Origin: Leucoraja ocellata
Taxonomy: Eukaryota
Assembly: GCA_036785375.1 (NCBI GenBank)
Contig: JAWMAR010000070.1
Coordinates: forward strand, 7,316,001 to 7,380,000
DNA length: 64,000 nt
Direction: 5' to 3'
Numbering within the stretch: position 1 is the first letter of the stretch; each line of letters starts with the position of its first letter. The position numbers and the translations under genes were made by a program. Shown piece after piece: positions 12,518 to 45,952 of the stretch. The notes under the pieces are model-generated. The model made no database searches. It was not told the DNA's origin and worked only from the letters and a program-made list of their open reading frames with translations.

Positions 12518-12672
12518 TTTTTCAGAGCCCCGCGCGATGTCGGGACCAGCTCCACACAACTCCATACGGCTCCGGCGATCAAAGTGGGACCGGCCCCGCG
12601 TGGCCGTACGGCTCAAGTGACCACGTTAGGTCGCGCTTGCCGCATGGAGTCGCATGCTCATGGGACAGGCCC
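12518..12672. mobile_element. Right half of a Harbinger-like MITE (left half survives at 34737-35017)
   Basis: Termini agggcctctccca / tgggacaggccct with a TTA duplication, relative to empty site cacttaatc at 1782 and 40994. Confidence 0.6.
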
Positions 12673-13559
12673 TTTAATCCGGCGATGTTGCCCGTAGTGA
12701 GCAAAAGTTGCACAAAGTTCACACCCAACTCAATGCTGGCGTACAAAGAATCACTCACACCGGCTGTCTTCAGGGCAGGCAGAAGAAAGTTTATTTAAAT
12801 TAAACGTACATTTACCGGTGCAAGCAAGGTCAGTTCTCCTCACTGCATGCGATCCACGCTCACACCTTCCACGCTGCTCATCTTTATACCTTTACTATTC
12901 CCTACTTAGTGTCAGAGTCAAACAATATGGAAACAGGCCCTTCCCCCAATACCATGTGCTCTAATTTTGCCCATTAATCTCCTATGTGGGACCTTATCAA
13001 ATACTTCCTGCAAGTCCAGGTACACTACATCCACTGGCTCTCCATTGTCCCCAGATCGTCTGACCACTAGTACATCAGGGAGATTGTTTGTGTTCTTCTT
13101 AGTGAAGACGGATCCAAAGTTTTTAGTCTATAAAGGTCCAATTTTAGTCTGAACTAATTTTGCTAGTTATTTTTTAGTTATCTTCTGTTGCTCTTTAAAA
13201 GAGTTACCCAATCCCCTGGCTTTCCGCTCATCTTTGCAACGTTATACCTGTTCTCTTTTATTTTGATAGTGTCCCTGACTTCCCTTGTCAGCCACGGTCG
13301 CCCCTAACTCCCCATGGAATCTTCCTTCCTCTTTGGAATCCGGGTGCTCCGGTTTCGTCCCACACCCCAGAGACGTGCAGGTTTGTAGGTTAATTGGTCA
13401 GTGTAAATTGTATCTAGTGTGTGGGATAGAACTAGTATATGGGGTGATCACTGGTCCCCATTGACTCTGTGGCCGAAGGGCTTGTTTCCCTGTTGTACCT
13501 CTGAACGGAACTAAACTAAACTAGACTTTGTTACTGACCCTGGGACTGGCCCTGCTGAA

Positions 13560-14096
13560 TCAGTGAGAGATCACCAGCTGCATCAATAATTCACAAATCG
13601 GTCTATCACTATAATGGAGCCAAACACAGGAATACGTCCCTGTATCTTCCTCTTTTACACCTGTCAGGAGCAACGTGGCGTCCTGTTCCCAAAGGACGTT
13701 TCGTTCCACGAACTTCCAGTGAACATGAGATCCCGTATAACGCGCATGCACTCTACTATGGAAATTGGCAATTGCAACACCATCTTTTTTCCATGTAACC
13801 ATGGGACTATTGTCAACGTTGGATACTTTACATGGCAACATAACAGAACCACCCAGAGATGCAACGAGCACCTTCTTGTTAATCGTTGATAGGTGATGAC
13901 TGATGGCATCAGAATCTGACTTGTCCGTGCATCTTGGAAACCGTTCATCGGTGACTTGCCGAGGGGCCCGTGCGTTCCGCCCGGCCAAGTTTGCTTCCTC
14001 TCCCCATTCTCTGGAGATCGGACCTGTTCCAGTTGCGGAGACTTGCCACACCATCTCCACAAGGACCATGAATCCTATCCATCTCTGCAGTCCCAT
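13560..14096 (-). CDS. Secreted single V-type Ig-domain protein, copy 2 (type B), 178 aa
   Basis: Same leader as copy 1; motifs VMLPC, VTW, DATLLL, DTGTYSC; open frame. Confidence 0.85.
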   Translation of the reverse strand: MGLQRWIGFMVLVEMVWQVSATGTGPISREWGEEANLAGRNARAPRQVTDERFPRCTDKSDSDAISHHLSTINKKVLVASLGGSVMLPCKVSNVDNSPMVTWKKDGVAIANFHSRVHARYTGSHVHWKFVERNVLWEQDATLLLTGVKEEDTGTYSCVWLHYSDRPICELLMQLVISH

Positions 14097-14692
14097 GTTC
14101 CTGTGGGTGAAACAATGGGTCACCTTATTGCAACTCAGTAGGATTCATGATGGCATTCCCTGAACCCGCCCAGAGTTGGGGAATCGAGAACCAGAGGACA
14201 TCGGTTTAAGGCGAGGGGGGGGGGGGGGGGGGGGGGGGGGAAGATTTAATGGGAAACTGAGGGGTGACTTTTTTACACAAAGGGTGGAGGGTGTTTGGAA
14301 CGAGCTGCCGGAAGAGGTAGTTGAGGCAGGTACTATCACAATGATTAAGAAACAGTTAGACAGGTACATTGATAGGACAGGATTAGAGGGGTAAGGGCCA
14401 AACGCAGGCAGGTGGGTCTAGTATTGATGGGGACACGTTGGTGGGCGCGGGCAAGTTGGGCCAAAGGTCTCGCTGTGACTCTATGACTCCATCACTTGTC
14501 CCACCCCGGTCATTCCTCCTTCTCCCTGGTCCTGTCTAGCAGAAGGTACAGAAGCTTGAAAGCGCGCACCACCAGACTCAGGAACAGCTTCTTCCCCTCT
14601 GCTATCAGGCTTCTGAACTGGGGGAACAGTGAACAGAGACAATCCCACCCCCATCACTCACAGACACTTGAAGGATCCACAGGGTTGGTTAC

Positions 14693-14848
14693 CAGCTCCG
14701 GAGTCTCCACACAGGGTGACGGGGTTGGTCTTGTTCTCATCTCCTGCCATCGCTCGCTCCTTTTATACCGACTCCCGGCTTCTCCTGCCCCTCATTGTCT
14801 GCCCTCACGTACATTCAACCAATCACTGCCTCCCACGGAGCATTGGCC
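14693..14848 (-). promoter_or_regulatory. Promoter and exon 1 of Ig copy 2
   Basis: TATAAAAG at 14767-14760; same CCAAT boxes and GTAACC donor. Confidence 0.65.
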
Positions 14849-15371
14849 GGAGTCAGCCGCGACCTCTCCACCCTCTGCCAAACGTGTCGTTGCATCAGCC
14901 GTTAACGTTTAACAAGAACAACGTCATCCCAGCTGCCAGCGGCCAACCAGGCGCCCCACACATCCTGCTTGTGTCTCCACCACGTCTCGTTCTGGTCAAC
15001 CCATCGCAGTTGAGGCAGAAACTATCCCAACGTTTAAGAAACAGCTAGACAGGAACAGGGATAGGTCAGATTTGGAGGGAAATGGACCAAACGTGGACAG
15101 GTGGGACTAGTGTAGCTGGGACATGTTGTCCAATGTGGGCAAGTTGGGCCGAAGGGCCTGTTTCCATGCTGTATCACTCTATAACTGTATTACACTATGA
15201 CATTAAATCTTCTGCTTATCGAATCCACACACAGATTAGTTGTTCAGCCAGAGCTGATCACACTTCTCGGCATCTGCATAAAATGGTGTCTGTCTTGTCG
15301 CGTCTTGTGCTGCTTGTTCGTGGTGGTGGAGAAATTGGTGTAAACGTGAAACATTAAATAAATAATGATAA

Positions 15372-15400
15372 CTAGACCAAGTGGGACCCGTTGGGCCCCG
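15372..15400 (-). mobile_element. Helitron-like 3' terminus (hairpin + CTAG|T); also at 30973 and 37121
   Basis: Minus strand gggaccc-aac-gggtccc-acttggt-CTAG-t (perfect hairpin in the 37121 copy); 5' end not identified. Confidence 0.45.
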
Positions 15401-16866
15401 TTCCCCCAACGTAATATTCCACCACTCACCCATACCCCACAATACTCACCCCACCCTCCCACAAGGAAAATTCTGGAAATGAAACCTCTCTCTTACTCCA
15501 CCCCCCCACAATGAAACGGGGAGCCCCCGCCCCAACCCACCCCTCCCCACAATCGTAATTATTTTGTAAATAAGGAGTAAATGAAACCTCTCAGCAATTC
15601 CACCCCCCACAATGAAAAGTCTCCTCCCAAGTAATCTAAATGAGATTCCTTTGCGATGTACCCGTCCCCCCAACGTAATATTCCACCACTCACCCATACC
15701 CCACAACTGCGCAGGCGAGTCTCTTACACTCCCTCCCCCTCGTCTTTACCCTCCTCCTTCTCTCCCCTCTCCTCCTCCACTCCCTCCATCACCTCTCCTT
15801 CCCTCTCATTTTTCCCTACCCTCAGTCACTGCCTCCCCTTTCGCACTCCCCCACTAAACACAACGTTTAAATAACATTTCTTCTCCTCCACTCCCTGCTT
15901 CTACTTACAACAATGTAAGGAATCTCTCATTGCACTGGCTGGAACTTATCTCAACACTGTTGATTGGGAGCTGAGATCCCATTCTGATGTCATTGTCGGA
16001 TCAACCCCCCCTTCCTCTCCCTCTATTCCCCCTCCTCACCCACTCTCCCTCCTCACCTCCCCCACTTTCCCCCCTCTTCCTCCCTACTCCCTTCTCTCCC
16101 CCAATCCCCCCCCCCCCCCCACCTCCTCACACTGCCTTGTAACTAACAACCTCCAATCCAGGCATCATTCTGGGATTCCTCTCCTGCACCCTCTCCAAAC
16201 TCTTTGGGAAATTGGCTCCGGTTATCTCCCCTATCTATGCCTCTCATCTCTATATTGTTAAAAGTCTCATCTTGTGTATATGTATACGTGTGTGTGTTGT
16301 CTGTGCCTTTCTGCCTTCATCAAAATGCCACGCATTAGCGCATTAGCTTTCACGCATTAGTAATCGTATTAACCCCTTTGACAAAATAAACTGCTCCACT
16401 TCACATTACATGCTGTAGTTCACAAGTTATAGCGTTTTAAAAATAGTGAAAACCAACTTATTAAACGGCAAACCTTCACCCCGCTTCGAGTGATGTCACA
16501 AAGGGGGAGTGGTCGACCACCAGCTTCCAGTGATGTCAGGGGGATGACCTCATTGAAATTAACTTTCCGCTTTATCCGATCCGGCCTTCTACGCCCCACA
16601 TGGAGTTTTTCGCGGCCATCAAAGAGGCGTCGAGACTGCAGCGGTGAAGGAGATATCGTGACCGCCATGGGCAGAAATCCTGGGGGGGGAACAGGGGACA
16701 CGTCTCCCTATGCTTTGGGAGGTGGGGGACGATTCCCCCCCGCCCATGTTTTGTGTTCCGGACTTTATCAGACGCTTTCTATGGGCAGAATCGTCCCGTT
16801 CGCGGGGCCTTTCAGCGCCCAAGCGGCTTAAAATCAAACTGCTGCATCGAGGCGATCGAGGCTCCC

Positions 16867-18312
16867 ATAGAAACGTAGAAAATAGGTGCAGGAGTAGGGC
16901 ATTCGGCCCTTCGAGCCTGCACTGCCATTTAATATGATTATACTGATCATCCAACTCAGTATGCCATAAAGTCCTGACATCCCAGGAATCAGTCTGGTGA
17001 GCCTTCTCTGTACTCCCTCTATGGCAAGAATGTCTTTCCTCAGATTAAGAGACCAAAACTGTACGCAATACTCCAGGTGTGGTCTCACCAAGAGCATGTA
17101 CAACTGCAGTAGAACCTCCCTGCTCCTATACTCAAATCCTTTTGCTATGAATGCTAACATACCATTCGCCTTCTTCACTGCCTGCTGCACCTGCATGCCT
17201 ACTTTTAATGACTGGTGTACCATGACACCCAGGTCTCGTTGCATCTCCCCCTTTCCTAATCGGCCACCATTCAGATAATAGTCTAATTTCCTGTTTTTGC
17301 CACCAAAATGGATAACCTCACATTTATCCACATTATACTGCATCTGCCATGCATTTGCCCACTCACCCAGCCTATCCAAGTCACCTTGAAGCCTCCTAGC
17401 ATCCTCCTCACAGCTAACACTGCCCCCAGCTTTGTGTCATCCGCAAACTTGGAAATGTTGCATACAATTCCCTCGTCCAAATCATTAATATATACCGTAA
17501 ATAGCTGGGGTCCCAGAACTGAGCCTTGCGGTACCCCACTAGTCACTGCCTGCCATTGTGAAAAGGACCCGTTTACTCCTACTCTTTGCTTCCTGTCTGC
17601 CAGCCAGTTCTCTATCCACATCAGTACTGAACCCCCAATACCATGTGCTTTAAGTTTGTATACTAATCTCTTATGTGGGACCTTGTCGAAAGCCTTCTGA
17701 AAGTCCAGATATAACACATGCACTGGTTCTCCCCTATCCACGCTACTAGTTACATCCTCGAAAAATTCTATAAGATTCGTCAGACATGATTTACCTTTCG
17801 TAAATCCATGTTGACTTTGTCCAATGATTTCACCACTTTCCATATGTGCTGCTATCCCATCTTTAATAACTGACTCTAGCAGTTTCCCCACTACCGATGT
17901 TAGGCTAACTGGTCTGTAATTCCCCGTTTTCTCTCTCCCTCTCTTTTTAAAATGTGGTGTTACATTAGCTACCCTCCAATCCTCAGGAACTACTCCCAAA
18001 TCTAAAGAGTTTTGAAAAATTATCACTAATGCATCCACTATTTCTGGGGCTACTTCCTTAAGTACTCTGGGATACAACCTATCTGGCCCTGGGGATTTAT
18101 CGGCTTTTAATTCATTCAATTTACCTACCACCACTTCCCGGCTAACCTGGATTTCACTCAGTTCCTCCATCTCATTTGACCTCCGGTCCCCTGCTATTTC
18201 CGGCAGATTATTTATGTCTTCCTTAGTGAAGACAGAACCAAAGTAGTTATTCAATTGGTCTGCCATGTCCTTGTTCCCCATGATCAATTCACTTGTTTCT
18301 GACTGCAAGGGA
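16867..18312 (-). mobile_element. Recombinant CR1 (site-1 3' end, site-2 5' end)
   Basis: ORFs 17283-18308 and 16834-17379. Left flank matches the 5131 site; right flank matches the 8350 site. Confidence 0.88.
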
Positions 18313-19778
18313 CCTGAAGGGCTTGGCCAAGCAGATACAAGGATTGAACCCGCAGTGGTTTAGGTATCGTGTAGGGGAATTTGATGTACAGTCCAAAAAT
18401 AAAGATTAGTTGTAGAGTTGCTGCCTTACAGCGCTAGAGACCCGCCTTCGATGGTAACTACGGGCACTGTCTGTACAGTGTATGTACATTGTCCCTGTGA
18501 CCATGTGGGTTTCCTCCGGGTGCTCTGGTTTCCTTTCAGATTGCAAAGACGTGTAGATTTGTAGGTTAATTGGCTTCAGTAAATTGTCCCTAGTGTGTAG
18601 GTTAGAACTAGTGTAGGGGTGATCACTGGTTGGGTTAGACTCGGTGGGCCGAAGAACCTGTTTCCATATCCTAACATATTCAGTTTTTCAGAGCTCCGCG
18701 CGATGTCGGGACCAGCTCCACACAACTCCATACGGCTCCGGCGATCAAAGTGGGACCGGCCCCGCGAGGCCGTACGGCTCAAGTGACCACGTTAGGTCGC
18801 GCTTGCCGCATGGAGTCGCATGCTCGTGGGACAGGCCCTTTAATCCGGCGATGTTGCCCGTAGTGAGCAAAAGTTGCACAAAGTTCACACCCAACTCAAT
18901 GCTGGCGTACAAAGAATCACTCACACCGGCTGTCTTCAGGGCAGGCAGAAGAAAGTTTATTTAAATTAAACGTACATTTACCGGTGCAAGCAAGGTCAGT
19001 TCTCCTCACTGCATGCGATCCACGCTCACACCTTCCACGCTGCTCATCTTTATACCTTTACTATTCCCTACTTAGTGTCAGAATCAAACAATATGGAAAC
19101 AGGCCCTTCCCCCAATACCATGTGCTCTAATTTTGCCCACTAATCTCCTATGTGGGACCTTATCAAATACTTCCTGAAAGTCCAGGTACACTACATCCAC
19201 TGGCTCTCCATTGTCCCCAGATCCTCTGACCACTAGTACATCAGGGAGATTGTTTGTGTTCTCCTTAGTGAAGACGGATCCAACGTTTTTAGTCTATAAA
19301 GGTCCAATTTTAGTCTGACCTAATTTTTTTCACATATCTAAAGAAGCTTTTACGATCCTCCTTTCTATTCTTGGCTATCTTACCTTCATACCTCATCTTT
19401 TCTCCCCGTATTGCTTTTTTAGTTATCTTCTGTTGCTCTTTAAAAGAGTTACCCAATCCCCTGGCTTTCCGCTCATCTTTGCAACGTTATACCTGTTCTC
19501 TTTTATTTTGATAGTGTCCCTGACTTCCCTTGTCAGCCACGGTCGCCCCTAACTCCCCTTGGAATCTTCCTTCCGCTTTCATCCCACACCCCAGAGACGT
19601 GCAGGTTTGTAGGTTAATTGGTCAGTGTAAATTGTAGCTAGTGTGTGGGATAGAACTAGTACATGGGGTGATCACTGGTCCCCGTTGACTCTGTGGGCCG
19701 AATGGCCTGTTTCCCTGAACTAAACTAAACTAAACTAAACTAGACTTTGCTACTAACTCTGGGACGGGCCCTGCTGAA

Positions 19779-20315
19779 TCAGTAGATTTCAAAGACTGCC
19801 AGCGAGACCCATTCTTCACAAGTCCTATTATCTTGAGTGGTCCAGACACAGGTATATAACCCTTCATCTTTCTGTTCTACGCCTGCCAGGATCAACGAGG
19901 CGTCATGTATCACATGGATATCATTATGCTTGAAACGCCAGCGGCCCTCCGATCGCTTCGCTATGTCAGGAGTTTTAAGACCATACCTGGCAATCGTAAC
20001 ATTGTATTTTCTCCAAATGACATTCAAGAGTTGATGGTATTCGCGGGATACTTTACAGGGCAGCGTAATGATACTACCCAGAGCTGCATCGAGCATATGC
20101 TCGCTAAATGATGCACCGTGATCACTGTCAGAATCTGACTCGTCCGTGCATCTTGGAAACCGTTCATTGGTGACTTGTCGAGGGGCCCGTGCGTTCCGCC
20201 CGGCCAAGTTTGCTTCCTCTCCCCATTCTCTGGAGATCGGACCTGTTCCAGTTGCGGAGACTTGCCACACCATCTCCACAAGGACCATGAATCCTATCCA
20301 TCTCTGCAGTCCCAT
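19779..20315 (-). CDS. Secreted single V-type Ig-domain protein, copy 3 (type A), 178 aa
   Basis: Close paralog of copy 1 (about 9 substitutions plus a different C-terminus); ITLPC...W...DEGLYTC. Confidence 0.85.
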   Translation of the reverse strand: MGLQRWIGFMVLVEMVWQVSATGTGPISREWGEEANLAGRNARAPRQVTNERFPRCTDESDSDSDHGASFSEHMLDAALGSIITLPCKVSREYHQLLNVIWRKYNVTIARYGLKTPDIAKRSEGRWRFKHNDIHVIHDASLILAGVEQKDEGLYTCVWTTQDNRTCEEWVSLAVFEIY

Positions 20316-20897
20316 GTTCCTGTGGGTGAAACAATGGGTCACCTTATTGCAACTCAGTAGGATTCATGATGGCATTCCCTGAACCCGCACAGAGTTGGGG
20401 AATCGAGAACCAGAGGACATCGGTTTAAGGCGAGGGGGGGGGGGAAAGATTTCATGGGAAACTGAGGGGTGACTTTTTTACACAAAGGGTGGAGGGTGTT
20501 TGGAACGAGCTGCCGGAAGAGGTAGTTGGGGCAGGTACTATCACAATGATTAAGAAACAGTTAGACAGGTACATTGATAGGACAGGATTAGAGGGGTAAG
20601 GGCCAAACGCAGGCAGGTGGGTCTAGTATTGATGGGGGCACGTTGGTGGGCGCGGGCAAGTTGGGCCGAAGGTCTCGCTGTGACTCTATGACTCCATCAC
20701 TTGTCCCACCCCGGTCATTCCTCCTTCTCCCTGGTCCTGTCTAGCAGAAGGTACAGAAGCTTGAAAGCGCGCACCACCAGACTCAGGAACAGCTTCTTCC
20801 CCTCTGCTATCAGGCTTCTGAACTGGGGGAACAGTGAACAGAGACAATCCCACCCCCATCACTCACAGACACTTGAAGGATCCACAGGATTGGTTAC

Positions 20898-21054
20898 CAG
20901 CTCCGGAGTCTCCACACAGGGTGACGGGGTCGGTCTTGTTCTCATCTCCTGCCATCGCTCGCTCCTTTTATACCGACTCCCGGCTTCTCCTGCCCCCTCA
21001 TTGTCTGCCCTCACGTACATTCAACCAATCACTGCCTCCCACGGAGCATTGGCC
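20898..21054 (-). promoter_or_regulatory. Promoter and exon 1 of Ig copy 3
   Basis: TATAAAAG at 20972-20965; same architecture. Confidence 0.65.
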
Positions 21055-22433
21055 GGAGTCAGCCGCGACCTCTCCACCCTCTGCCAAACGTGTCGTTGCA
21101 TCAGCCGTTAACGTTTAACAAGAACAACGTCATCCCAGCTGCCAGCAGCCAACCAGGCGCACCACACATCCTGCTTGTGTCTCCACCACGTCTCGTTCTG
21201 GTCAACCCAGAGATCCGAGTTTTTCGCGGCCATCAAAGAGGCGTCGAGACTGCGGCGGTGAAGGAGATATCGTGACCGCAATGGGCAGAAATCCTGGGGG
21301 GGGGGGGAACAGGGGGCACGTCTCCCTATGCTTTGGGAGGTGGGGGACGATTCCCCCCCCGCCCATGTTTTGTGTTCCGGACTTTATCAGACGCTTTCTA
21401 TGGGCAGAATCGTCCCGTTCGCGGGGCCTTTCAGCGCCCAAGCGGCTTAAAATCAAACTGCTGCATTGAGGCGATCGAGGCTCCCATAGAAACATAGAAA
21501 ATAGGTGCAGGAGTAGGCCATTCAGCCTCCTAGCATCCTCCTCACAGCTAACACTGCCCCCCAGTTTCGTGTCATCCGCAAACTTGGAGATGTTGCATTC
21601 AACTCCCTCATCCAGATCATTAATATATATCGTAAATAGCTGGGGTCCCAGCACTGAGCCTTGCGGTACCCCACTAGTCACTGCCTGCCATTCTGAAAAG
21701 GACCCGTTTACTCCTACTCTTTGCTTTCTGTCTGCCAGCCAGTTCTCTATCCACATCAATACCAATGTTGAAACCCCCGCCGGGCGATGAAAGGCCCCGC
21801 GAACGGGCCGATTCAAGCCCACGATTCCGGGCAGACGAAGCTGCTGTTGCTGGAGTTCGGAGTCGGTCACCAACCAAGTCAGCTCCCGATGTTACCGTCC
21901 ACAGGGCCCACGGCCGAATCCTCGCGTGTGTGCCGCATGCACGCGTGTGCATGTGTGCCGCCATGGAATTGTGCCCCACCATGTTTTGATACCGATTTCC
22001 ATGCATGGAGATGACCTCCAATGAAGTGTAAATGCATGGTTGATTAGATTACTGTAACAGCATTGTAAATATTGTACATAATGTGCCAGGCAGTTATCCT
22101 ACTGTTTGTTGATTGGCTAAAGTGTTGAGCCCTGGCAGGTTTGTTTGAATTCCAGGGTAAATGTTGGCATTATTCAAGTTAAGTTAGCATCTTCCCAGAA
22201 GCTTCTCCTGAAACAATGTATGGGATCTGTAGTGGTCTGGGGAACTGTCTATAATATACTGATGTAATTAATATGTTTGATTGGATTGTAAAGAGACCAC
22301 CCCTATGTAGTTCGGCCCCTCAAGGTTCGGGGACTTATAAAAGGCAGCCCCCACGAGGTCCTTTGTCGATCTTCTGGAAGAATCCTTGGGACAGCGTGAC
22401 CTTTTGGAGTGTTTCTGCTTGCACGAGGCTGAA

Positions 22434-25400
22434 CATAGAAACATAGAAACATAGCTAATAGGTGCAGGAGTATGCCATTCGCCCTTCGAGCCTGCACCGC
22501 CATTCAATATGATCATGGCAGATCATCCAACTCAGTATCCTGTAACTGCGTTCTCTCCATACCACCTGATCCATTTAGCCACAAGGGCCACATCTAACTC
22601 CCTCTTAAATATAGCCAATGAACTGGCTTCAACTACCTTCTGCGGCAGAGAATTCCAGAGATTCACCACTCTCTGTGTGAAAAAAGTTGTCCTCATCTCG
22701 GCCCCAAAAGACTTCCTCTTATCCTTAAACTGTGACCCCTTGTTCTGGACTTCCCGAACATCGGGAACAATTTTCCTGCATCTAGCCTGTCCAACCCCTT
22801 AAGAATTTTGTAAGTTTCTATAAGATCCCCCCTCAATCTTCTAAATTCTAGCGAGTACAAACCGAGTCTATCCAGTCTTTCGTCATATGAAAGTCCTGAC
22901 ATCGCAGGAATCAGTCTGGTGAGCCTTCTCTGTACTCCCTCTATAGCAAGAATGTCTTTCCTCAGATTAAGAGACCAAAACCTGTACGCAATACTCCAGG
23001 TTGGTCTCACCAAGAGCATGTACAACTGCAGTAGAACCTCCCTGCTCCTATACTCAAATCCTTTTGCTATGAATGCTAACATACCATTCGCCTTCTTCAC
23101 TGCCTGCTGCACTGCATGCCTACTTTTAATGTTTAAGAGGGAACTGCAGATGCTGGAGAATCGAAGGTTACACAGAAAAGCTGGAGAAACTCAGCCGGGT
23201 GCAGCAGCATCTATGGAGCGAAGGAAAAAGGCAACGTTTCGGGCCGAAACCCCTTCTTCAGACTGATCAGGGGTGGGGGTGGGGTGGGGACAAGAAAGGA
23301 AAAGGAGGAGTCGCGGAAGGCTGGAGGGTGGGAGGAGAAGGCTGGAGGGTGGGAGGAGACACCAGGGGAGCTGAGGAAGGGGAGGAGACAGCAAGGACTA
23401 ACAGAATTGGGAGAAGTCGATGTTCATGCCCCCGGGGTGCAGACTCCCCAAACGGAATATGAGGTGCTGTTCCTCCAATTTCCGGTGCTGCTCGCTGTGG
23501 CCATGGAGGAGACCCAGGACAGAGAGGTCGGAGGCGGAGTGGGAGGGGGAGTTGAAGTGCTGAGCCACCGGGAGGTCAGCTAGGTTATTGCGGACCGAGC
23601 GGAGGTGTTCGGCGAAACGATCGCCCAACCTCCGCTTGGTCTCACTGATATAGATCTGCTGACATCTAGTGCAGCGGACGCAATAGATGAGGTTGGAAGA
23701 GATGCAGGTAAACCTCTGTCGCACCTGGAACGATTGCTTGGGTCCCTGAACGGAGTTGAGGGGGGAGGTAAAGGGACAAGTGTTGCATCTCCTGCGGCCG
23801 CAAGGGAAAGTGCCCGGGGAGGGGGTGGACCGGAGGGGAAGGGAAGGAGAATTGACAAGGGAGTTATGGAGGGAGCGGTCTTTGCGGAAGGCAGATATGG
23901 GGGGAGATGGGAAGATGTGGCTAGTAGTGGGGTCACGTTGGAGGTGGCGAAACTGACGGAGGATTATTTTTTGTATGTGATGGCTGGTGGGGTGAAAGGT
24001 GAGGACTAGGGGGACTCGGCCCTTGTTGCGAGTGCGGGGATGGGGAGAGAGAGCAGTGTTGCGGGGTATGGAAGAGACCCTGGTGCGAGCCTCATTTATG
24101 GTGGAGGAGGGGAACCCCCGTTCCCTGAATAGTGAGGACATTTCAGATGTCCTGGTGTGGAACGCCTCATCCGTGGAGCAGATGCGGCGTAGACGGAGGA
24201 ATTGGGAGTAGGGGTGGAGTCCTTACAGGAAGCAGGGTGGGAAGAAGTGTAGTCCAGATAGCCATGGGAGTCAGTGGGTTTATAGTGTATGTCGGTTATA
24301 AGTCTATCACCTGCAATGGAATAGTGAGGTCAAGGAATGGTAGGGAAGTGTCGGAGATGGTCCAGGTGTATTTCAGTGCCGGGTGGAAATTAGTGGTGAA
24401 GTGGATGAAGTCAGTCAGTTGTGTGCGGGTGCAGGAGGTGGCACCAAAGCAGTCGTCGATGTAGCGGAGGTAGAGGTTGGGGATGGGGCCCTGGTATGTA
24501 TTGAACAAGGATTGCTCGACGTAACCTACAAATAGGCAGGCATAGCTGGGGCCCATGCGTGTGCCCATAGCTACGCCTTGTATTTGAGGAAGTGGGAGGA
24601 GTCGAACTCGAAGTTATTGAGGGTAAGGACCAGCTCCGCTAGGCGGAGGAGAGTGTCAGTGGCTGGGTATGGGTTGCTTGTCTGGTCGAGGAAGAACCGG
24701 AGGGCTGTGAGACCATCGTAGTGGGGGATGGAGGTGTATAGTGATTGGACGTCCATGGTGAAGATGAGGGGGTGAGGGCCTAGAGAATTGAATGCGCGGA
24801 GACGACGGAGAGTGTCTGAGGTGTCTTGGACATAGGTAGGGAGGGATTTAACCAAGGGTGATAGGATGGAGTCAAGGTATTTGGAAATGAGTTCGGTGGG
24901 GCACGAACAGGCGGAGACAATGGGTCTTCCGGACAATCAGGTTTGTGGATTTTAGGGAGAAGGTAAAATCGGGCTGTGCGGGGCTGGGGAACGATGAGGT
25001 TGGAGGCTCGGTCGGGTAGGGCATTGGAGTGGATGAAGTTGGTGATGGTGCTGGAGATGGTGGCCTGGTGCTCGTCAGTGGGGTCATGGTCCAGGGGTAA
25101 GTAGGAGGAGGTGTCCGATAGTTGGCGCGTGGCCTCAGCTTTGTAGGTTTACCTGCATCTCTTCCAACCTCATCTATTGCGTCCGCTGCTCTAGATGTCA
25201 GCAGAGCTTATCGGTGAGATCGGTGACCAAGCGGAGGTGGGCGATCGTGTTCGCCGAACACCTCCGCTCGGTCCGCAATAACCTAGCTGACCTCCCGGTG
25301 GCTCAGCACTTCAACTCCCCCTCCCACTCCGCCTCCGACCTCTCTGTCCTGGGTCTCCTCCATGGCCACAGCGAGCAGCACCGGAAATTGGAGGAACAGC

Positions 25401-26806
25401 ACCTCATATTCCGTTTGGGGAGTCTGCACCCCGGGGGCATGAACATCGACTTCTCCCAATTCTGTTAGTCCTTGCTGTCTCCTCCCCTTCCTCAGCTCCC
25501 CTGGTGTCTCCTCCCACCCTCCAGCCTTCTCCTCCCACCCTCCAGCCTTCCGGCTACTCCTCCTTTTCCCTTTCTTGTCCCCACCCACCCCCACCCCTGA
25601 TCAGTCTGAAGAAGGGTTTCGGCCCAAAACGTTGCCTATTTCCTTCGCTCCATAGATGCTGCTGCACCCGCTGAGTTTCTCCAGCTTTTCTGTGTAACCT
25701 GCCTACTTTTAATGACTGGTGTACCATGACACCCAGGTCTCGTTGCATCTCCCCCTTTCCTAATCGGCCACCATTCAGATAATAGTCTAATTTCCTGTTT
25801 TGCCACCAAAGTGGATAACCTCACATTTATCCACATTATACTGCATCTGCCATGCATTTGCCCACTCACCCAGCCTATCCAAGTCACCTTGCAGCCTCCT
25901 AGCATCCTACTCAGAGCTAACACTGCCCCCAGCTTTGTGTCATCCGCAAACTTGGAGATGTTGCATTCAATTCCCTCGTCCAAATCATTAATATATACCG
26001 TAAATAGCTGGGGTCCCAGAACTGAGCCTCGAGGTACCCCACTAGTCACTGCCTGCCATTGTGAAAAGGACCCGTTTACTCCTACTCTTTGCTTCCTGTC
26101 TGCCAGCCAGTTCTCTATCCACATCAGTACTGAACCCCCAATACCGTGTGCTTTAAGTTTGTATACTAATCTCTTATGTGGGACCTTGTCGAAAGCCTTC
26201 TGAAAGTCCAGATATAACACATCCACTGGTTCTCCCCTATCCACGCTACTAGTTACATCCTCGAAAAATTCTATAAGATTTGTCAGACATGATTTACCCT
26301 TCATAAATCCATGCTGACCTTGTCCAATGATTTCACCACTTTCCAAATGTGCTACTATCCCATCTTTAATAACTGATTCTAGCAGTTTCCCCACTACCGA
26401 CGTTAGACTAACTGGTCTGTAATTCCCCATTTTCTCTTTTTAAAATGTGGTGTTACATTAGCTACCCTCCAATCCTCAGGAACTACTCCCAAATCTAAAG
26501 AGTTTTGAAAAATTATCACTAATGCATCCACTATTTCTGGGGCTACTTCCTTAAGTACTCTGGGATACAACCTATCTGGCCCTGGGGATTTATCGGCTTT
26601 TAATTCATTCAATTTACCTACCACCACTTCCCGGCTAACCTGGGTTTCACTCAGTTCCTCCATCTCATTTGACCCCCGGTCCCCTGCTATTTCCGGCAGA
26701 TTATTTATGTCTTCCTTAGTGAAGACGGAACCAAAGTAGTTATTCAATTGGTCTGCCATGTCCTTGTTCCCCATGATCAATTCACTTGTTTCTGACTGCA
26801 AGGGAC
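22434..26806 (-). mobile_element. CR1 (site 2 paralog) split by a Penelope-like insertion
   Basis: Same flanks as 6551-8350; RT fragments on both sides of 23131-25699. Confidence 0.88.
23131..25699 (-). mobile_element. Penelope-like retroelement (RT + GIY-YIG) with inverted terminal copy
   Basis: RT motifs GRPIVS, MDVQSLYT, MGTRMGP, RYIDD; endonuclease NLIY...YISET..RL..RF.EH. 25146-25699 is an inverted copy of the 3' part; 14-bp TSD tgcctacttttaat (23117-23130 / 25700-25713). ORF is frameshifted. Confidence 0.92.
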
Positions 26807-29178
26807 CTGAAGGGCTTGGCCAAGCAGATACAAGGATTGAACCCGCAGTGGTTTAGGTATCGTGTAGGGGAATTTGATGTACAGCACAAAAATAAAGTTT
26901 AGTTGTTCCAGTGCTTGACTCAGTGGTTTTTGACTGAACTAGACTGGGGGTAAGCTTGAGAAGAATGTATTTAATCCCTCCCCCCCCCCCACTACCACCC
27001 TCCTTCTCCCTCTACCCCTTCCCACTCTCTCTCTACCTCCTTTCTCTCTGCCTCTCTCCTTCACTCCCCCTCCTCTCTCCCTCTAAGTATTGAAGAGGGA
27101 GGGTGAAGAGTAGGAAGAGGGGATGCGGCGAAATGAGCCGCGCCTCCAGAGTTGGGGGCTATGAGTGAGTGGTGGAATATTGCGTTGGGGAACGGGTGAG
27201 TGGTGGAATATTGCGTTGGGGAATGGGTGAGTGGTGGAATATTGCGTTGGGTTTGTACTTGGTCTGCACAGTAACTTTATATAATTCTATCAGGTCTATG
27301 GGCGGCTCTGTAGTGGCAGCCCTCCACTGTCTACCCTGGCCTATCATGATTATATACTTACACCATAAGTACACAATAAGGTCTCAGTTATTCCAAGTAA
27401 ACCAGACCATGATAGTACAAGACAACGTACGTGGGGCATCACCAGTGGTGCAGTGTCCATCAGGGTTGTGTAGGGTTGTGGTGAGTGGCGTAGGGTTGTG
27501 GTTGGGGTTGTGCAGGCTGGTTCAACAACCTTGTGCTTGCTGGGAAGAAGCTGCTCTTGAACCTGGAGCTCACGGTTCTCAGGCTCCTGTACCTTCCCCT
27601 CAGTAGTGGTGATAAGAGAGTGTGGCCAGGGTGGTGTGGGTCTATAACTGGAAGACCAGGCTCCATACGGAGGTAAGAAAGCTCCTTGACAACCACAATT
27701 GACACCCAACGAGGGTCAAAACTGGACTCTAATCAGCAGCCCTAACAATGCACGAGGGCAATGCAGGGGCGGTACAGTGGCGCAGCGGTAGAGTTGCTGC
27801 CTTACAGCGCTAGAGACCCGCCTTCGATGGTAACTACGGGCACTGTCTGTACAGTGTATGTACATTGTCCCTGTGACCATGTGGGTTTCCTCCGGGTGCT
27901 CTGGTTTCCTTTCAGATTACAAAGACGTGTAGATTTGTAGGTTAATTGGCTTCAGTAAATTGTCCCTAGTGTGTAGGTTAGAACTAGTGTAGGGGTGATC
28001 ACTGGTTGGGTTAGACTCGGTGGGCCGAAGAACCTGTTTCCATATCCTAACATATTCAGTTTTTCAGAGCCCCGCGCGATGTCGGGACCAGCTCCACACA
28101 ACTCCATACGGCTCCGGCGATCAAAGTGGGACCGGCCCCGCGAGGCCGTACGGCTCAAGTGACCACGTTAGGTCGCGCTTGCCGCATGGAGTCGCATGCT
28201 CGTGGGACTGGCCCTTTAATCCGGCGATGTTGCCCGTAGTGAGCAAAAGTTGCACAAAGTTCACACCCAACTCAATGCTGGCGTACAAAGAATCACTCAC
28301 ACCGGCTGTCTTCAGGGCAGGCAGAAGAAAGTTTATTTAAATTAAACGTACATTTACCGGTGCAAGCAAGGTCAGTTCTCCTCACTGCATGCGGTCCACG
28401 CTCACACCTTCCACGCTGCTCATCTTTATACCTTTACTATTCCCTACTTAGTGTCAGAGTCAAACAATATGGAAACAGGCCCTTCCCCAATACCATGTGC
28501 TCTAATTTTGCCCATTAATCTCCTATGTGGGACCTTATCAAATACTTCCTGCAAGTCCAGGTACACTACATCCACTGGCTCTCCGTTGTCCCCAGATCGT
28601 CTGACCACTAGTACATCAGGAGATTGTTTGTGTACTCCTTAGTGAAGACGGATCCAAAGTTTTTAGTTTATAAAGGACCAATTTTAGTCTGAACTAATTT
28701 TTTTCACATATCTAAAGAAGCTTTTACGATCCTCCTTTCTATTCTTGGCTATCTTACCTTCATACCTCATCTTTTCTCCCCGTATTGCTTTTTTAGTTAT
28801 CTTCTGTTGCTCTTTAAAAGAGTTACCTAATCCCCTGGCTTTCCGCTCATCTTTGCAACGTTATACCTGTTCTCTTTTATTTTGATAGTGTCCCTGACTT
28901 CCCTTGTCAGCCACAGTCGCCCCTAACTCCCCTTGGAATCTTCCTTCCTCTTTGGAATCCGGGTGCTCCGGTTTCGTCCCACACCCCAGAGACGTGCAGG
29001 TTTGTAGGTTAATTGGTCAGTGTAAATTGTATCTAGTGTGTGGGATAGAACTAGTATATGGGGTGATCACTGGTCCCCATTGACTCTGTGGCCGAAGGGC
29101 TTGTTTCCCTGTTGTACCTCTGAACGGAACTAAACTAAACTAGACTTTGTTACTGACCCTGGGACTGGCCCTGCTGAA

Positions 29179-29715
29179 TCAGTGAGAGATCATCAGCTGC
29201 ATCAATAATTCACAAAACGGTCTATATGGATACTTGATCCAAACACAGGAATACGTCCCTTTATCTTCCTCTTTTACACCTGTCAGGAGCAACGTGGCGT
29301 CCTGATTCCTAATGACGTCTCGTTGCACGAACCTCCAGTGAACATCAGATCCGTAATAAAACGCTAACGCTCTCTCATGGAAATGGGCAATTTGAACACC
29401 ATCTTTATTCCATGTAACCGTGGGACTATTGTCAACGTTGGATACATTACATGGCAACGTAACAGAACCACCCAGAGATGCAACGAGCACCTTCTTGTTA
29501 ATCGTTGATAGGTGATGACTGATGGCATCAGAATCTGACTTGTCCGTGCATCTTGGAAGCGTTTCATTGGTGACCTGTCGAGGGGCCCGTGCGTTCCGCC
29601 CGGCCAAGTTTGCTTCCTCTCCCCATTCTCTGGAGGTCGGACCTGTTCCAGTTGCGGAGACTTGCCACACCATCTCCACAAGGACCATGAATCCTATCCA
29701 TCTCTGCAGTCCCAT
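29179..29715 (-). CDS. Secreted single V-type Ig-domain protein, copy 4 (type B), 178 aa
   Basis: Paralog of copy 2; VTLPC...W...DKGTYSC; open frame. Confidence 0.85.
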   Translation of the reverse strand: MGLQRWIGFMVLVEMVWQVSATGTGPTSREWGEEANLAGRNARAPRQVTNETLPRCTDKSDSDAISHHLSTINKKVLVASLGGSVTLPCNVSNVDNSPTVTWNKDGVQIAHFHERALAFYYGSDVHWRFVQRDVIRNQDATLLLTGVKEEDKGTYSCVWIKYPYRPFCELLMQLMISH

Positions 29716-30295
29716 GTTCCTGTGGTGAAACAATGGGTCACCTTATTGCAACTCAGTAGGATTCATGATGACATTTCCTGAACCCGCCCAGAGTTGGGGA
29801 ATCGAGAACCAGAGGACATCGGTTTAAGGCGAGGGGGGGGGGAAAGATTTAATGGAAAACTGAGGGGTGACTTTTTTACACAAAGGGTGGAGGGTGTTTG
29901 GAACGAGCTGCCGGAAGAGGTAGTTGAGGCAGGTACTATCACAATGATTAAGAAACAGTTAGACAGGTACATTGATAGGACAGGATTAGAGGGGTAAGGT
30001 CCAAACGCAGGCAGGTGGGTCTAGTATTGATGGGGACACGTTGGTGGGCGCGGGCAAGTTGGGCCGAAGGTCTCGCTGTGACTCTATGACTCCATCACTT
30101 GTCCCACCCCGGTCATTCCTCCTTCTCCCTGGTCCTGTCTAGCAGACGGTACAGAAGCTTGAAAGCGCGCACCACCAGACTCAGGAACAGCTTCTTCCCC
30201 TCTGCTATCAGGCTTCTGAACTGGGAGAACAGTGAACAGAGACAATCCCACCCCCATCACTCACAGACACTTGAAGGATCCACAGGGTTGGTTAC

Positions 30296-30448
30296 CAGCT
30301 CCGGAGTCTCCACACAGGTGACGGGGTCGGTCTTGTTCTCATCTCCTGCCATCGCTCGCTCCTTTTATACCGACCCCGGCTTCTCCTGCCCCTCATTGTC
30401 TGCCCTCACGTACATTCAACCAATCACTGCCTCCCACGGAGCATTGGC
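30296..30448 (-). promoter_or_regulatory. Promoter and exon 1 of Ig copy 4
   Basis: TATAAAAG at 30369-30362; same architecture. Confidence 0.65.
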
Positions 30449-33400
30449 CGGAGTCAGCCGCGACCTCTCCACCCTCTGCCAAACGTGTCGTTGCATCAGC
30501 CGTTAACGTTTAACAAGAACAACGTCATCCCAGCTGCCAGCGGCCAACCAGGCGCCCCACACATCCTGCTTGTGTCTCCACCACGTCTCGTTCTGGTCAA
30601 CTCATCGCAGTTGAGGCAGAACTATCCCGACGTTTAAGAAACAGTTAGACAGGTACAGGCATAGGTCAGATTTGGAGGGATATGGACCAAACGTGGACAG
30701 GTGGGACTATTGTAGCTGGGACATGTTGTCCAATGTGGGCAAGTTGGGCCAAAGGGCCTGTTTCCATGCTGTATCACTCTATGACTGTATAACACTATGA
30801 CATTAAATCTTCTGCTTATCGAATCCACACACAAGATTAGTTGTTCAGCCAGAGCTGATCACACTTCTCGGCATCTGCATAAAATGGTGTCTGTCTTGTT
30901 GCGTCTTGTGCTGCTTGTTCGTGGTGGTGGAGAGATTGGTGTAAACGTGAAACATTAAATAAATAATGATAACTAGACCAAGTGGGACCCGTTGGGCCCC
31001 GTTCCCCCAACGTAATATTCCACCACTCACCCATACCCCACAATACTCACCCCATCCCCTAGCAAGGAAAATTCTGGAAATGAAACCTCTCTCTTACTCC
31101 ACCCCCCCACAATGAAACGGGGAGCCCCCGCCCCCAACCCACCCCTCCCCACAATCGTAATTATTTTATAAATAAGGAGTAAATGAAACCTCTCAGCAAT
31201 TCCACCCCCCACAATGAAAAGCCTCCTCCCAAGAAATCTAAATGAGATTCCTTTGCGATGTACCCGTCCCCCCAACGCAATTTTCCACCACTCACCCATA
31301 CCCCACAACTGCGCAGGCGAGTCTCTTACACTCCCTCCCCCTCGTCTACACCCTCCTCCTTCTCTCCCCTCTCCTCCTCCACTCCCTCCATCACCTCTCC
31401 TTCCCTCTCATTTTTCCCTACCCTCAGTCACTGCCTCCCCTTTGGGAGCTGAGATCCCATTCTGATGTCATTGTCGGATCAACCCCCCCTTCCTCTCCCT
31501 CTATTCCCCCTCCTCTCCCACTCTCCCTCCTCACCTCCCCCACTTTCCCCCCTCTTCCTCCCTACTCCCTTCTCTCCCCCAATCCCCCCCCCCCCCACCT
31601 CCTCACACTGCCTTGTAACTAACAACCTCCAATCCAGGCATCATTCTGGGATTCCTCTCCTGCACCCTCTCCAAACTCTTTGGGAAATTGGCTCCGGTTA
31701 TCTCCCCTATCTATGCCTCTCATCTCTATATTGTTAAAAGTCTCATCTTGTGTATATGTATACGTGTGTGTGTTGTCTGTGCCTTTCTACCTTCATCAAA
31801 ATGCCACGCATTAGCGCATTAGCTTTCACGCATTAGTAATCGTATTAACCCCTTTGACAAAATAAACTGCTCCACTTCACATTACATGCTGTAGTTCACA
31901 AGTTATAGCGTTTTAAAAATAGTGAAAACCAACTTATTAAACGGCGAACCTTCACCCTGCTTCGAGTGATGTCACAAAGGGGGAGTGGTCGACCAGCAGC
32001 TTCCAGTGATGTCAGGGGGAGGACCTCATTGAAATTAACATTCCGCTTTATCCGATCCGGCCTTCTACACCCCACATGGGGTTTTTTTCGCGGCCATCAA
32101 AGAGGCGTTGAGACTGCGGCGGTGAAGGAGATATCGTGACCACCATGGGCGGAAATCCTGGGGGGGGACAGGGGGCACGTCCCCCTATGCTTTGGGAGGT
32201 GCGGGACGATTCCCCCGGTTCATGTTTTGTATTTGGCACTTTATCGGACGCTTTCTATGGGCAGAATCAGCCCATTCGCGGGGCCTTTCAGTGCCCAGCG
32301 TGGCTTAAAATCAAATTGCTGCATCAAGGTGATCGAGGCTCCCGATGTTGAAGCCCCGCCGGGCGATGAAAGGCCCCGCGAACGGGCCGATTCAAGCCAC
32401 ACGATTCGGGGCTGACGAAGCTGCTGTTGCTGGAGTTCGGAGTCGGTCACCAACCAAGTCAGCCCCCGATGTTACCGTCCACAGGGCCCACGGCCAAAGC
32501 CTCGCGTGTGTGCCGCATGCATGTGTGCCGCCAAGGAATTGTTTCCCCCCATGTTTTGATGATGATTTCCGTGCATGGAGAAGGCAGCGGTGAGGCATCG
32601 CGACGGTGGGTCGGCACGTTGGCGGTGAGGCCTCGCAGATATGGAGCAGCTGCGGCGGCAGGAAAGGAGAGGGAGAGAGAGAGAAGGAGGGATTGGGGGA
32701 GAGGAGAAAGAGACGGGGAAGATCCTGGGGAGGTGAGGAAGGACGGGGGAGATTGAGGGAGAGGAGGGGGTAGGGAGGGTAGTTGCCACATCTGCACTCC
32801 CTCTCTTGCCCCCTTTCTACCCTCCCTCACCCACTCTACCCTCCTCCCTCTCCCTCTCTACCTGTAAATCCTCGCTAAATCAGAGCAGTAATAGCACCAA
32901 AATTTAGTAAAGGACATGTATTGTTCGGCCATTTTGGTCAAGTCTGATGTACTGTGCAGAAGTAAGACAAGCTTCTGAATGGTGCCGGTAAGTCTGGGCC
33001 CCACATCAATGTTGCAGATAAGAAATGTATGAGAATTGACAGAATGAATGCGATTTCTGCAGAAGACCTCCAAGGGAGTGTAAAATGCATGAAGTTGATT
33101 GGATTACTGCAACAGCATTGTAAATATTGTAAATCATGTTGCCAGTTACCCTGCTGTTTGTTGATTGGCTAAAGTGTTGAGCCCTGGCAGGTGTTTATTT
33201 GAATTCCAGGGTAAATGTTGCATTATTCAAGTTAAGTTAGCTTCTTCCAGCAGCTTCACCTGAAACAATGTATGGGAGACTGTTATTGGTCTGGGGAACT
33301 GTCTATAATGTACTGATGTAATTAATATGTTTGATTGGATTGTAAAGAGACCACCTCTATGTAGTTTGGCCCCTCAAGGCTCAGGGACCTATAAAAAGCA

Positions 33401-35530: not shown

Positions 35531-36692
35531 CCGACACTTCCCTACCATTCCTTGACCTCACTATCTCCATTGCAGGTGATAGACTTCTAACCGACATACA
35601 CTATAAACCCACTGACTCCCATGGCTATCTGGACTACACTTCTTCCCACCCTGCTTCCTGTAAGGACTCCATCCCCTACTCCCAATTCCTCCGTCTACGC
35701 CGCATCTGCTCCACGGATGAGGCGTTCCACACCAGGACATCTGAAATGTCCTCACTATTCAGGGAACGGGGGTTCCCCTCCTCCACCATAAATGAGGCTC
35801 GCACCAGGGTCTCTTCCATACCCCGCAACACTGCTCTCTCTCCCCATCCCCGCACTCGCAACAAGGGCCGAGTCCCCCTAGTCCTCACCTTTCACCCCAC
35901 CAGCCGTCACATACAAAAAATAATCCTCCGTCAGTTTCGCCACCTCCAACGTGACCCCACTACTCGCCACATCTTCCCATCTCCCCCCATATCTGCCTTC
36001 CGCAAAGACCGCTCCCTCCATAACTCCCTTGTCAATTCTTCCCTTCCCTCTCGGTCCACCCCCTCCCCGGGCACTTTCCCTTGCGGCCGCAGGAGATGCA
36101 ACACTTGTCCCTTTGCCTCCCCCCTCGACTCCGTTCAAGGACCCAAGCAGTCGTTCCAGGTGCGACAGAGGTTTACCTGCATCTCTTCCAACCTCATCTA
36201 TTGCGTCCGCTGCTCTAGATGCCAGCAGATCTATATCGATGAGACCAAGCGGAGGTTGGGCGATCGTTTCGCCGAACACCTCCGCTCGGTCCGCAATAAC
36301 CAAGCTGACCTCCCGGTGGCTCAGCACTTCAACTCCCCCTCCCACTCCGCCTCCGACCTCTCTGTCCTGGGTCTCCTCCATGGCCACAGCGAGCAGCACC
36401 GGAAATTGGAGGAACAGCACCTCATATTCCGTTTGGGGACTCTACACCCCCGGGGCATGAACATCGAATTCTCCCAATTCTGTTAGTCCTTGCTGTCTCC
36501 TCCCCTTCCTCAGCTCCCCTGCTGTCTCCTCCCACCCTCCAGCCTTCTGGCTACTCCTCCTTTTCCCTTTCTTGTCCCCACCCACCCCCACCCCCGATCA
36601 GTCTGAAGAAGGGTTTCGGCCCGAAACGTTGCCTATTTCCTTCGCTCCATAGATGCTGCTGCACCCGCTGAGTTTCTCCAGCTTTTCTGTGT
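35528..36692 (+). mobile_element. 5'-truncated Penelope-like element (GIY-YIG end)
   Basis: 246-aa ORF 35746-36486 nearly identical to 23398-24141; 14-bp TSD aaccaggcgcccca (35514-35527 / 36693-36706). Confidence 0.92.
36598..36635 (+). ncRNA. Minimal hammerhead-ribozyme core in the Penelope terminal repeat
   Basis: CTGAAGA-a-GGG-tttcgg-CCC-GAAAC-GTT; also on the minus strand at ~23230-23263. Stem I pairing is weak. Confidence 0.55.
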
Positions 36693-45371: not shown

Positions 45372-45952
45372 GTTCCTGTGGGTGAAACAATGGGTCACCT
45401 TATTGCAACTCAGTAGGATTCATGATGACATTCCCTGAACCCGCCCAGAGTTGGGGAATCGAGAACCAGAGGACATCGGTTTAAGGCGAGGGGGGGGGGA
45501 AAGATTTAATGGAAAACTGAGGGGTGACTTTTTTACACAAAGGGTGGAGGGTGTTTGGAACGAGCTGCCAGAAGAGGTAGTTGAAGCAGGTACTATCACA
45601 ATGATTAAGAAACAGTTAGACAGGTACATTGATAGGACAGGATTAGAGGGGTAAGGGCCAAACGCAGGCAGGTGGGTCTAGTATTGATGGGGACACGTTG
45701 GTGGGCGCGGGCAAGTTGGGCCGAAGGTCTCGCTGTGACTTTATGACTCCATCACTTGTCCCACCCCGGTCATTCCTCCTTCTCCCTGGTCCTGTCTAGC
45801 AGAAGGTACAGAAGCTTGAAAGCGCGCACCACCAGACTCAGGAACAGCTTCTTCCCCTCTGCTATCAGGCTTCTGAACTGGGGGAACAGTGAACAGAGAC
45901 AATCCCACCCCCATCACTCACAGACACTTGAAGGATCCACAGGGTTGGTTAC

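Follow-up and report, generated by a model that had tools for sequence, protein, structure and literature searches.

Replacement-only divergence of a V-type immunoglobulin domain between recently duplicated genes of the skate Leucoraja ocellata

The five-gene array and the divergence of c2 and c4

The genes considered here lie in a 64,000-nucleotide stretch of the Leucoraja ocellata genome (assembly GCA_036785375.1, contig JAWMAR010000070.1, positions 7,316,001 to 7,380,000), hereafter the window. It contains five tandem copies of one type of open reading frame (ORF), all on the minus strand, which were found by tblastn with the second copy as query (matches at 3468-3995, 13563-14123, 19794-20342, 29182-29730 and 44850-45398). 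They are called c1 to c5 in window order, and the copies 2 and 4 of a preliminary description of this DNA correspond to c2 and c4. The product of each copy has about 178-190 residues and consists of a hydrophobic leader (MGLQRWIGFMVLVEMVWQVSATG...), a linker of about 50 residues with one cysteine, and one immunoglobulin (Ig) domain. All five copies exceed the Pfam cut-offs for V-set, Ig_3 and ig; for V-set (PF07686), with a cut-off of 26 bits, the scores are 37.9, 42.5, 31.0, 32.2 and 31.2 bits. The ORFs terminate 0-20 residues past the G strand, and no hydrophobic segment follows the domain. Considering the hydrophobic leader, the lack of a transmembrane segment and the stop right after the G strand, these proteins are probably secreted.

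An ungapped codon comparison of c2 and c4, together with an alignment of 4 kb around both copies, located their divergence in the Ig domain. Codons 1-85 held four replacement codons (27, 50, 52 and 53) and two silent ones (46 and 47), whereas codons 86-175 held 25 replacement codons and no silent one. The preliminary description, which had counted about 25 amino acid differences in the Ig part against 4 before it and had seen essentially no silent changes in the domain, was therefore correct on both points. The peptide strings that it quoted for the two copies (AIANFHSRVHARYT/QIAHFHERALAFYY, ERNVLWE/QRDVIRN, LHYSDRPI/IKYPYRPF) are exact, and the multi-base codon swaps that it mentioned account for 8 of the 25 changed codons. 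The 25 codons comprise 37 changed bases, with 17 codons changed at a single base, 4 at two and 4 at three. Both 178-codon ORFs are intact, without stops or indels. In the Ig part 37 of 309 nt differ, compared with 53 of 3,391 bases of flank and intron (1.56%; Fisher p = 7e-18). Counted per 100 nt, mismatches number 0-5 across the roughly 4 kb (0-3 in the intron), but 14, 13 and 10 in the windows over 13843-13544. The near-identity of intron and flanks reported earlier is thus upheld, with the correction that the intron lies in the 5'-untranslated region (UTR) and the coding sequence is a single exon.

The Ig part as analyzed (codons 76-178) has 68.7 silent and 240.3 replacement sites. The replacement and silent rates (dN and dS) between c2 and c4 in this part were 0.162 and 0.030 by NG86, 0.159 and 0.012 by LWL85, 0.160 and 0.017 by maximum likelihood (ML), and 0.165 and 0 by YN00, giving a dN/dS ratio (omega) of 5.5 to infinity. 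A comparison of domain with leader had been proposed in the preliminary description; the Ig omega is at least 5.5, and the leader plus linker gave a dN of 0.027 and a dS of 0.049 (NG86). The dN of the Ig part is about tenfold higher than the divergence of the non-coding DNA around it, and at the flank rate only 3.75 replacements would be expected in it (probability of at least 25, 4e-13). When random substitutions were placed on the c2 Ig sequence by Monte Carlo simulation, the probability of finding no silent codon was at most 0.0006 for 37 substitutions, 0.0014-0.007 for 25 (one event per codon) and 0.013-0.034 for 16, a number close to that of the single-change codons. Moreover, four triple-changed codons have a probability of 5e-5 under random placement. 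By our reading, three clean runs of three changed bases (codons 114, 117 and 121) coincide with codon boundaries, and codon 163 lies within a four-base run. Judged from the sequences, such runs in codon register fit selection at the level of residues better than a mutation process of tandem substitutions.

The window also provides an internal control. Self-BLAST revealed two units of collinear blocks, one with c1 and c2 and the other with c3 and c4, at offsets of 15.5-18.5 kb and with 95.6-98.8% identity; their collinearity indicates one tandem duplication of a two-gene unit of about 16 kb. In the pair c1/c3, the Ig part differs at 6 of 309 nt and the flanks at 35 of 1,700 (p = 1.0), with a dN of 0.013 and a dS of 0.031 in the Ig part. 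Because this pair arose in the same duplication and has no excess, the acceleration belongs to the c2/c4 lineage and is no regional effect. The diversifying selection suggested in the preliminary description is accordingly backed by four estimates of dN/dS and by a control pair without excess. Unit 1 alone carries an intact 933-residue ORF of a long interspersed nuclear element (LINE) with endonuclease and reverse transcriptase (8302-11103, plus strand), and this insertion is probably younger than the duplication.

The gene models are as follows. The annotated relatives in Leucoraja erinacea consist of a short upstream exon and exactly the window-type ORF, with the stop at the same place. The window genes have this upstream exon about 565 nt 5' of their ATG, and the upstream ATG, which is the start in the Leucoraja RefSeq models, stands 10-16 nt downstream of a TATAAAA box (about 14760-14766 at c2). 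This ATG probably lies outside the transcript, and the annotated N-terminal extension of 31 residues is probably untranslated. Since the upstream ATG hugs the box and the upstream frame is broken in c4, the methionine of MGLQ is most likely the true start. The 5'-UTR intron contains a poly-G tract of about 30 G in c2 (about 14213-14241) and about 10 G in c4 (about 29833-29843), at which reads appear to be cut. Two N-glycosylation sequons exist in c4 (N50 NET and N90 NVS; about 29560-29568 and 29440-29448) and none in c2; they arise from the replacements D50N/R52T and K90N. The older paralogue c5 is about 93% identical to LOC129708937 of Leucoraja, as counted from the printed alignment.

Table 1. 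Positions of the genes, their parts and the duplicated segments in the window.
Feature	Position	Strand	Basis or remark
c1, control pair member	3432-3968	minus	tblastn, translation, Pfam
c2 coding sequence	13563-14096	minus	178 codons, single exon; stop codon 13560-13562; ORF list, translation, Pfam
c3, control pair member	19782-20315	minus	tblastn, translation, Pfam
c4 coding sequence	29182-29715	minus	178 codons, single exon; stop codon 29179-29181; ORF list, translation, Pfam
c5, older paralogue	44802-45371	minus	tblastn, translation, Pfam
Hyper-diverged span of c2	13572-13841	minus	codons 86-175 of V-set domain; domain coded by 13563-13871
Matching hyper-diverged span of c4	29191-29460	minus	domain coded by 29182-29490
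c2 5'-UTR intron	14101-14661	minus	GTGAGT donor at 14661, CAG acceptor ending 14101; near-identical in c4
c2 exon 1, probably non-coding	14662-14750	minus	tblastn with first 31 residues of P0001 (LOC129708939); sequence reading
c4 exon 1, upstream reading frame broken	30264-30352	minus	tblastn: two overlapping pieces in different frames
Segmental-duplication unit 1 (c1 + c2)	2931-16866		collinear self-BLAST blocks
Segmental-duplication unit 2 (c3 + c4)	19286-32343		collinear self-BLAST blocks
Homogenized 5' blocks	3699-4856, 13821-15003, 20046-21209, 29440-30601, 45102-46255		five copies

Elsewhere in the window, an ORF fragment or exon of glycosyl hydrolase family 18 (GH18, chitinase) lies at 58144-58512 on the plus strand (E = 1.6e-9). 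Two inverted ORF copies of 246-247 residues (23398-24141, minus strand, and 35746-36486, plus strand) belong to a 1.2-kb inverted repeat with 95.7% identity; the copy at 23398-24138 has no Pfam match and is probably part of a transposable element. Runs of N occur at 61506-61766, 61886-62288 and 62741-63072.

Predicted fold, variable positions and the wider family

For c2, AlphaFold with an alignment of 12 sequences predicted a confident V-type sandwich at residues 70-178 (pLDDT by block 68-92, mostly 80-92), and residues 1-67 were of low confidence. The modelled strands are A (70-80), B (84-87), C (99-104), C' (107-113), C'' (117-120), D (127-129), E (142-145), F (153-160) and G (167-177). The canonical V-set residues C89, W102, Y155 and C157 are invariant in all 14 aligned family members, as are cysteines 56, 89, 157 and 168. 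The nearest solved folds found by Foldseek were the N-terminal V domains of nectin-1, CD155, CAR, 2B4 and PD-L1 (E = 4e-9 to 1e-7), with 15-28% identity and a TM-score to the target of 0.6-0.85. A sequence search of PDB with the c2-type protein gave generic Ig matches (best full-domain E = 1e-4), and the search for a named relative in PDB sequences, Foldseek and the ESM Atlas returned generic V-set neighbours only. A rearranging antigen-receptor V segment (Ig, TCR or IgNAR) was considered and ruled out, because the germline ORF itself supplies the FG loop and all of the G strand (167-177), and a stop follows directly. No heptamer of a recombination signal sequence was seen after the stop by eye, without a formal scan.

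None of the 15 family-invariant columns of the Ig core changed between c2 and c4. In an alignment of the other ten family members, the entropy is 1.93 bits for the 25 columns at which c2 and c4 vary and 1.23 for the 78 identical ones (Mann-Whitney p = 1.6e-5). Strands A, B, E and F contain 2 variable sites in 21 residues, and strands C, C', C'', D and G contain 9 in 32. The loops at the end of the complementarity-determining regions (CDR; BC, C'C'', DE and FG) have 11 in 32, and the opposite loops 3 in 18. The stretch from C' to DE is variable at 14 of 31 positions (p = 0.002), a stretch chosen post hoc. A binding surface, on which the preliminary description placed the changes, is thus only suggested, by the spared core and the coincidence with hypervariable columns, and the CDR-like loops have no significant enrichment.

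Two Leucoraja proteins were used to polarize the 25 sites, at the protein level only. Seven sites are derived in c2 and 3 in c4; 12 have three or more residues, 2 have both states within the Leucoraja pair, and 1 is mixed. At 12 of the 25 sites the two relatives carry a third residue. In the Ig part, c2, c4 and the Leucoraja proteins are about equidistant (24-29 of 103 residues). The Leucoraja pair itself, P0001 and P0157 (LOC129708939 and LOC129708938), has 5 differences in 103 residues of the Ig part and 8 in 75 residues of leader and linker, a pattern opposite to that of c2/c4. The P0157 linker (ARAYFK) resembles that of the c5-type neighbour, and these sequences suggest conversion of the 5' part in P0157.

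In database searches, Leucoraja erinacea, Rhinoraja longicauda and Narcine bancroftii were the only species with members of the family, in 8 clusters, of which 7 are named 'uncharacterized protein' and 1 'nectin-1-like'. Word-index searches yielded 7 family proteins among 89 candidates and 8 among 8,000 candidates scored. A profile search of the whole library gave 1,893 matches at E <= 0.001; among the best 150 of these 1,893, judged by length and matched stretch, only P0001 and P0071 were single-domain full-length matches. P0079 and P0114 were examined as relatives and rejected as proteins with repeated V domains. There is a single Ig match in each protein, and the lengths are 175-221 residues. 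A candidate RxxR site for convertase cleavage ahead of the Ig part reads RNAR in 9 of the 14 aligned members and WNAR in 4 and is absent from the Narcine protein (our own count). Literature searches, including by LOC and XP identifiers and judged by titles and abstract openings, yielded no paper on the family.

Between the old paralogues (among c1/c3, c2/c4 and c5), the Ig part has a dN of 0.42-0.59 and a dS of 0.43-0.57 (NG86). The resulting dN/dS over the whole Ig domain, about 0.8-1.4, is unusually high for a folded domain. These sequences suggest a long-running diversification across the family and not in c2/c4 alone. The leader and linker, on the other hand, have a dS of only 0.06-0.15 between the same old paralogues, and 24 leader columns are invariant in the family alignment. 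A 5' block of about 1.15 kb, including promoter, exon 1, intron, and leader and linker to about codon 92, is about 95% identical in the five copies. Because the conservation extends equally into intron and promoter (about 95%), it reflects homogenization of the DNA and not protein constraint alone. Judged from these alignments, the 5' cassette is under concerted evolution, homogenized at the DNA level, with a sharp edge inside the coding exon. Taken together, the family is apparently restricted to batoids and apparently consists of secreted single V domains, which would form a recognition system under current selection.

Explanations of the divergence

We consider it probable that the Ig domains of c2 and c4, V domains encoded in the germ line, diverged under positive diversifying selection for altered recognition specificity once the two-gene unit had recently been duplicated. 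On this account, a segment of about 16 kb with two genes for small, probably secreted single-V-domain proteins was duplicated in tandem recently, and its non-coding DNA is now 1.5-2% diverged. The daughter pair c1/c3 then drifted at the pace of its flanks, and c2/c4 fixed amino acid replacements at about 10 times the neutral rate. Many of these replacements struck the same codons repeatedly, and they are limited to the V-set domain from the B strand to the G strand. Selection would favor altered specificity of the V domain, possibly aided by exchange among close paralogues. The putative ligand-binding face would include strands C, C', C'' and D together with the CDR-like loops BC, C'C'', DE and FG. 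The ligand itself may be fast-changing, for example microbial, parasitic or reproductive; the preliminary description had proposed an arms race, with a pathogen, prey or mate as the putative partner.

Several points weigh against diversifying selection. Only about 69 silent sites stand behind dS, so that omega is imprecise, and the test has modest strength when restricted to the 17 codons with one changed base (p about 0.01-0.03). Multi-nucleotide mutation events, by which tests of dN/dS are inflated, could lie behind the eight multi-base codons. The enrichment of variable sites in the CDR-like top loops is not significant (11 of 32 versus 14 of 71, p = 0.14). The equidistance of c2, c4 and the Leucoraja proteins means that these distances do not fix the order of duplication and speciation, and there may have been exchange with close paralogues or alleles beyond the window. 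The sequencing runs with which we compared the stretch 12900-14900 add two further points. Three were DNA-type runs, compared as contigs (X1 and X2 from organism A, X6 from organism B), and the fourth was a poly-A RNA run from organism C, X22, compared as raw reads. The exact c2 sequence was in none of the four, so that the assembly of c2 lacks confirmation from independent reads, although contigs show presence and not absence; and the RNA run had zero depth over both exons, which, coming from a single run, says little.

The runs were informative about the variable states. The flanks of c2 behave in them as high-copy repeats, and the Ig part has modest depth. At 13706, 13727, 13774, 13827 and 13840, all depth in the three DNA-type runs carries the c4 letter. 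The 30 decoded rows comprise 19 c4 states, 5 new letters at c2/c4-variable sites and 6 new letters elsewhere; among the new letters, by our reading, the lone third-position silent change is at 13743 in X6. X1 and X2 share one organism label and have different FG-loop contigs, which hints at FG-loop polymorphism in organism A. X6 encodes residues that match P0001, and over 385 nt it departs from c2 by 40 letters and 7 gaps; across exon 1 and the intron, the best contigs of this run have 1 differing letter in 311 and 1 in 129.

An origin of the differences by mosaic exchange seems unlikely, though it is the most serious competitor. It would hold that short tracts were imported by gene conversion or unequal recombination from young subfamily members or alleles outside the window, and that selection only maintains a pool of shuffled variants. 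The contigs of organism A are in fact mosaics of c2 and c4 states, the alternatives T/K (152) and V/M (175) recur in LOC129708938/39, and the 5' block has been homogenized among copies whose Ig dS is about 0.5. However, the 25 replacement codons came without any silent difference, and the unchanged codons between them are identical to the base. Without silent hitchhikers any donor must share the young age of the pair, and positive selection would have been needed for its variants all the same. Nor is there a donor among c1, c3 and c5. Conversion from these three was rejected, as they differ from both copies at 89-101 of the approximately 270 sites at which c2 and c4 agree, many of them silent, and identical runs across a variable site reach 14 nt at most. 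Old duplicates with homogenized flanks were rejected by argument: densely selected codons would keep conversion out of the exon, which should then have gathered silent differences, and the expected silent differences are not present. Less probable still is a false duplication, in which the units would be two haplotypes of one locus and c2 and c4 alleles under balancing selection of the MHC kind. A unit divergence of 1.5-2.8%, the collinear order and the failure to find the exact window sequence in the public runs compared would suit it. Yet the independent Leucoraja erinacea assembly has two neighbouring c2/c4-like genes (LOC129708938 and LOC129708939), large insertions such as the LINE ORF differ between the units, and even between alleles the replacement-only pattern would still mean diversifying selection.

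The remaining explanations concern mutation and constraint. A targeted germ-line hypermutation, by an AID-like or error-prone process that leaves contiguous multi-base changes in the V exon as in shark somatic hypermutation, would account for the eight-fold local excess of substitutions, the runs of 2-4 adjacent changed bases, and a ratio of transitions to transversions of 11:26 in the Ig part versus 33:20 in the flanking sequence outside the coding region (p = 0.003). A mutational process, however, would not spare silent positions, and none of the 25 changed codons is silent; WRC/GYW hotspots are not enriched (7 of 37 versus 42 of 309, p = 0.31), the clean three-base runs stand exactly in codon register, and the V exons of c1 and c3, which are of the same age, are unaffected. 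We regard this process as very improbable. It is hardly credible that one copy owes its changes to relaxed constraint or to an error of sequencing or assembly. Such an explanation could appeal to the broken upstream RefSeq-start frame in c4 exon 1, but that frame probably is not transcribed, given the position of its ATG past the TATA box. Moreover, both ORFs are intact, the changes are codon-aware with an omega significantly above 1 and not near it, the derived changes are commoner in c2 than in c4, and the c4 states are present in independent runs.

Comparison with known systems and significance

Birth-and-death evolution, segmental duplication, patchy gene conversion and a dN above dS in the recognition domain characterize MHC, KIR/Ly49, CEACAM/PSG and the teleost NITR. 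The skate genes resemble these as an Ig-superfamily multigene family with segmental duplication and a dN above dS limited to the recognition domain. In contrast, those families encode membrane receptors with further domains, whereas the skate product is a stand-alone soluble V domain with a homogenized leader and linker. Beside them, an omega of at least 5 across an entire domain is unusually high for duplicates only 1.6% apart. Precursors of conotoxins and antimicrobial peptides have the same architecture, with a conserved prepro region and a hypervariable mature part. The leader and linker of the skate family are near-identical across paralogues and species, but its variable part is an Ig domain of about 100 residues and not a short peptide.

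Nectin, PVR (CD155), CAR and 2B4 provided the best structural matches of the predicted domain and the best full-domain PDB sequence matches. The skate protein differs from nectin in having a single V domain without C-type domains, transmembrane segment or cytoplasmic tail, at the low identity given above. With IgNAR V and camelid VHH it shares a recognition unit that consists entirely of one autonomous V domain, and extra cysteines beyond the canonical pair (here C56 and C168). Unlike them, it has no rearrangement and no constant region, and its diversity is germline and multigenic, not somatic.

The skate proteins also resemble the VCBPs, which are secreted, germline-encoded, non-rearranging V-type Ig proteins of multigene clusters with hypervariable V regions (PMC4757023 for part of this description, the remainder being general background). 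VCBPs have two tandem N-terminal V domains, and the skate proteins have one; the skate polypeptide lacks their C-terminal chitin-binding domain, since it stops right after the G strand, and its host is a jawed vertebrate. No sequence relationship to VCBP beyond the generic V-set was found by Pfam, PDB and Foldseek searches, and the comparison is one of analogous design, not of membership. On this analogy we tentatively propose, as a possibility that we hold to be less likely than its opposite, that skates and rays have a large germline repertoire of V domains that do not rearrange and are secreted as stand-alone proteins. Such a humoral 'innate nanobody' system would lie among chitinase genes, in function parallel to the protochordate VCBPs but split into separate genes, its paratope-like surface renewed by duplication and bursts of positive selection (omega at least 5).

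With 24% of the domain residues replaced, by replacement changes only, and with flanks 1.6% apart, the c2/c4 signal is among the strongest pairwise adaptive signals in a vertebrate genome, and the neighbouring pair c1/c3, duplicated along with it, provides a built-in control. V domains of this kind, naturally autonomous and soluble, could serve as binder scaffolds. The finding raises the questions of which ligands these proteins have and whether, beside their rearranging receptors, cartilaginous fishes rely on germline repertoires of V domains. If the proposed repertoire exists, a jawed vertebrate equipped with Ig, TCR and IgNAR would possess a second system of V-domain recognition, one not described before.

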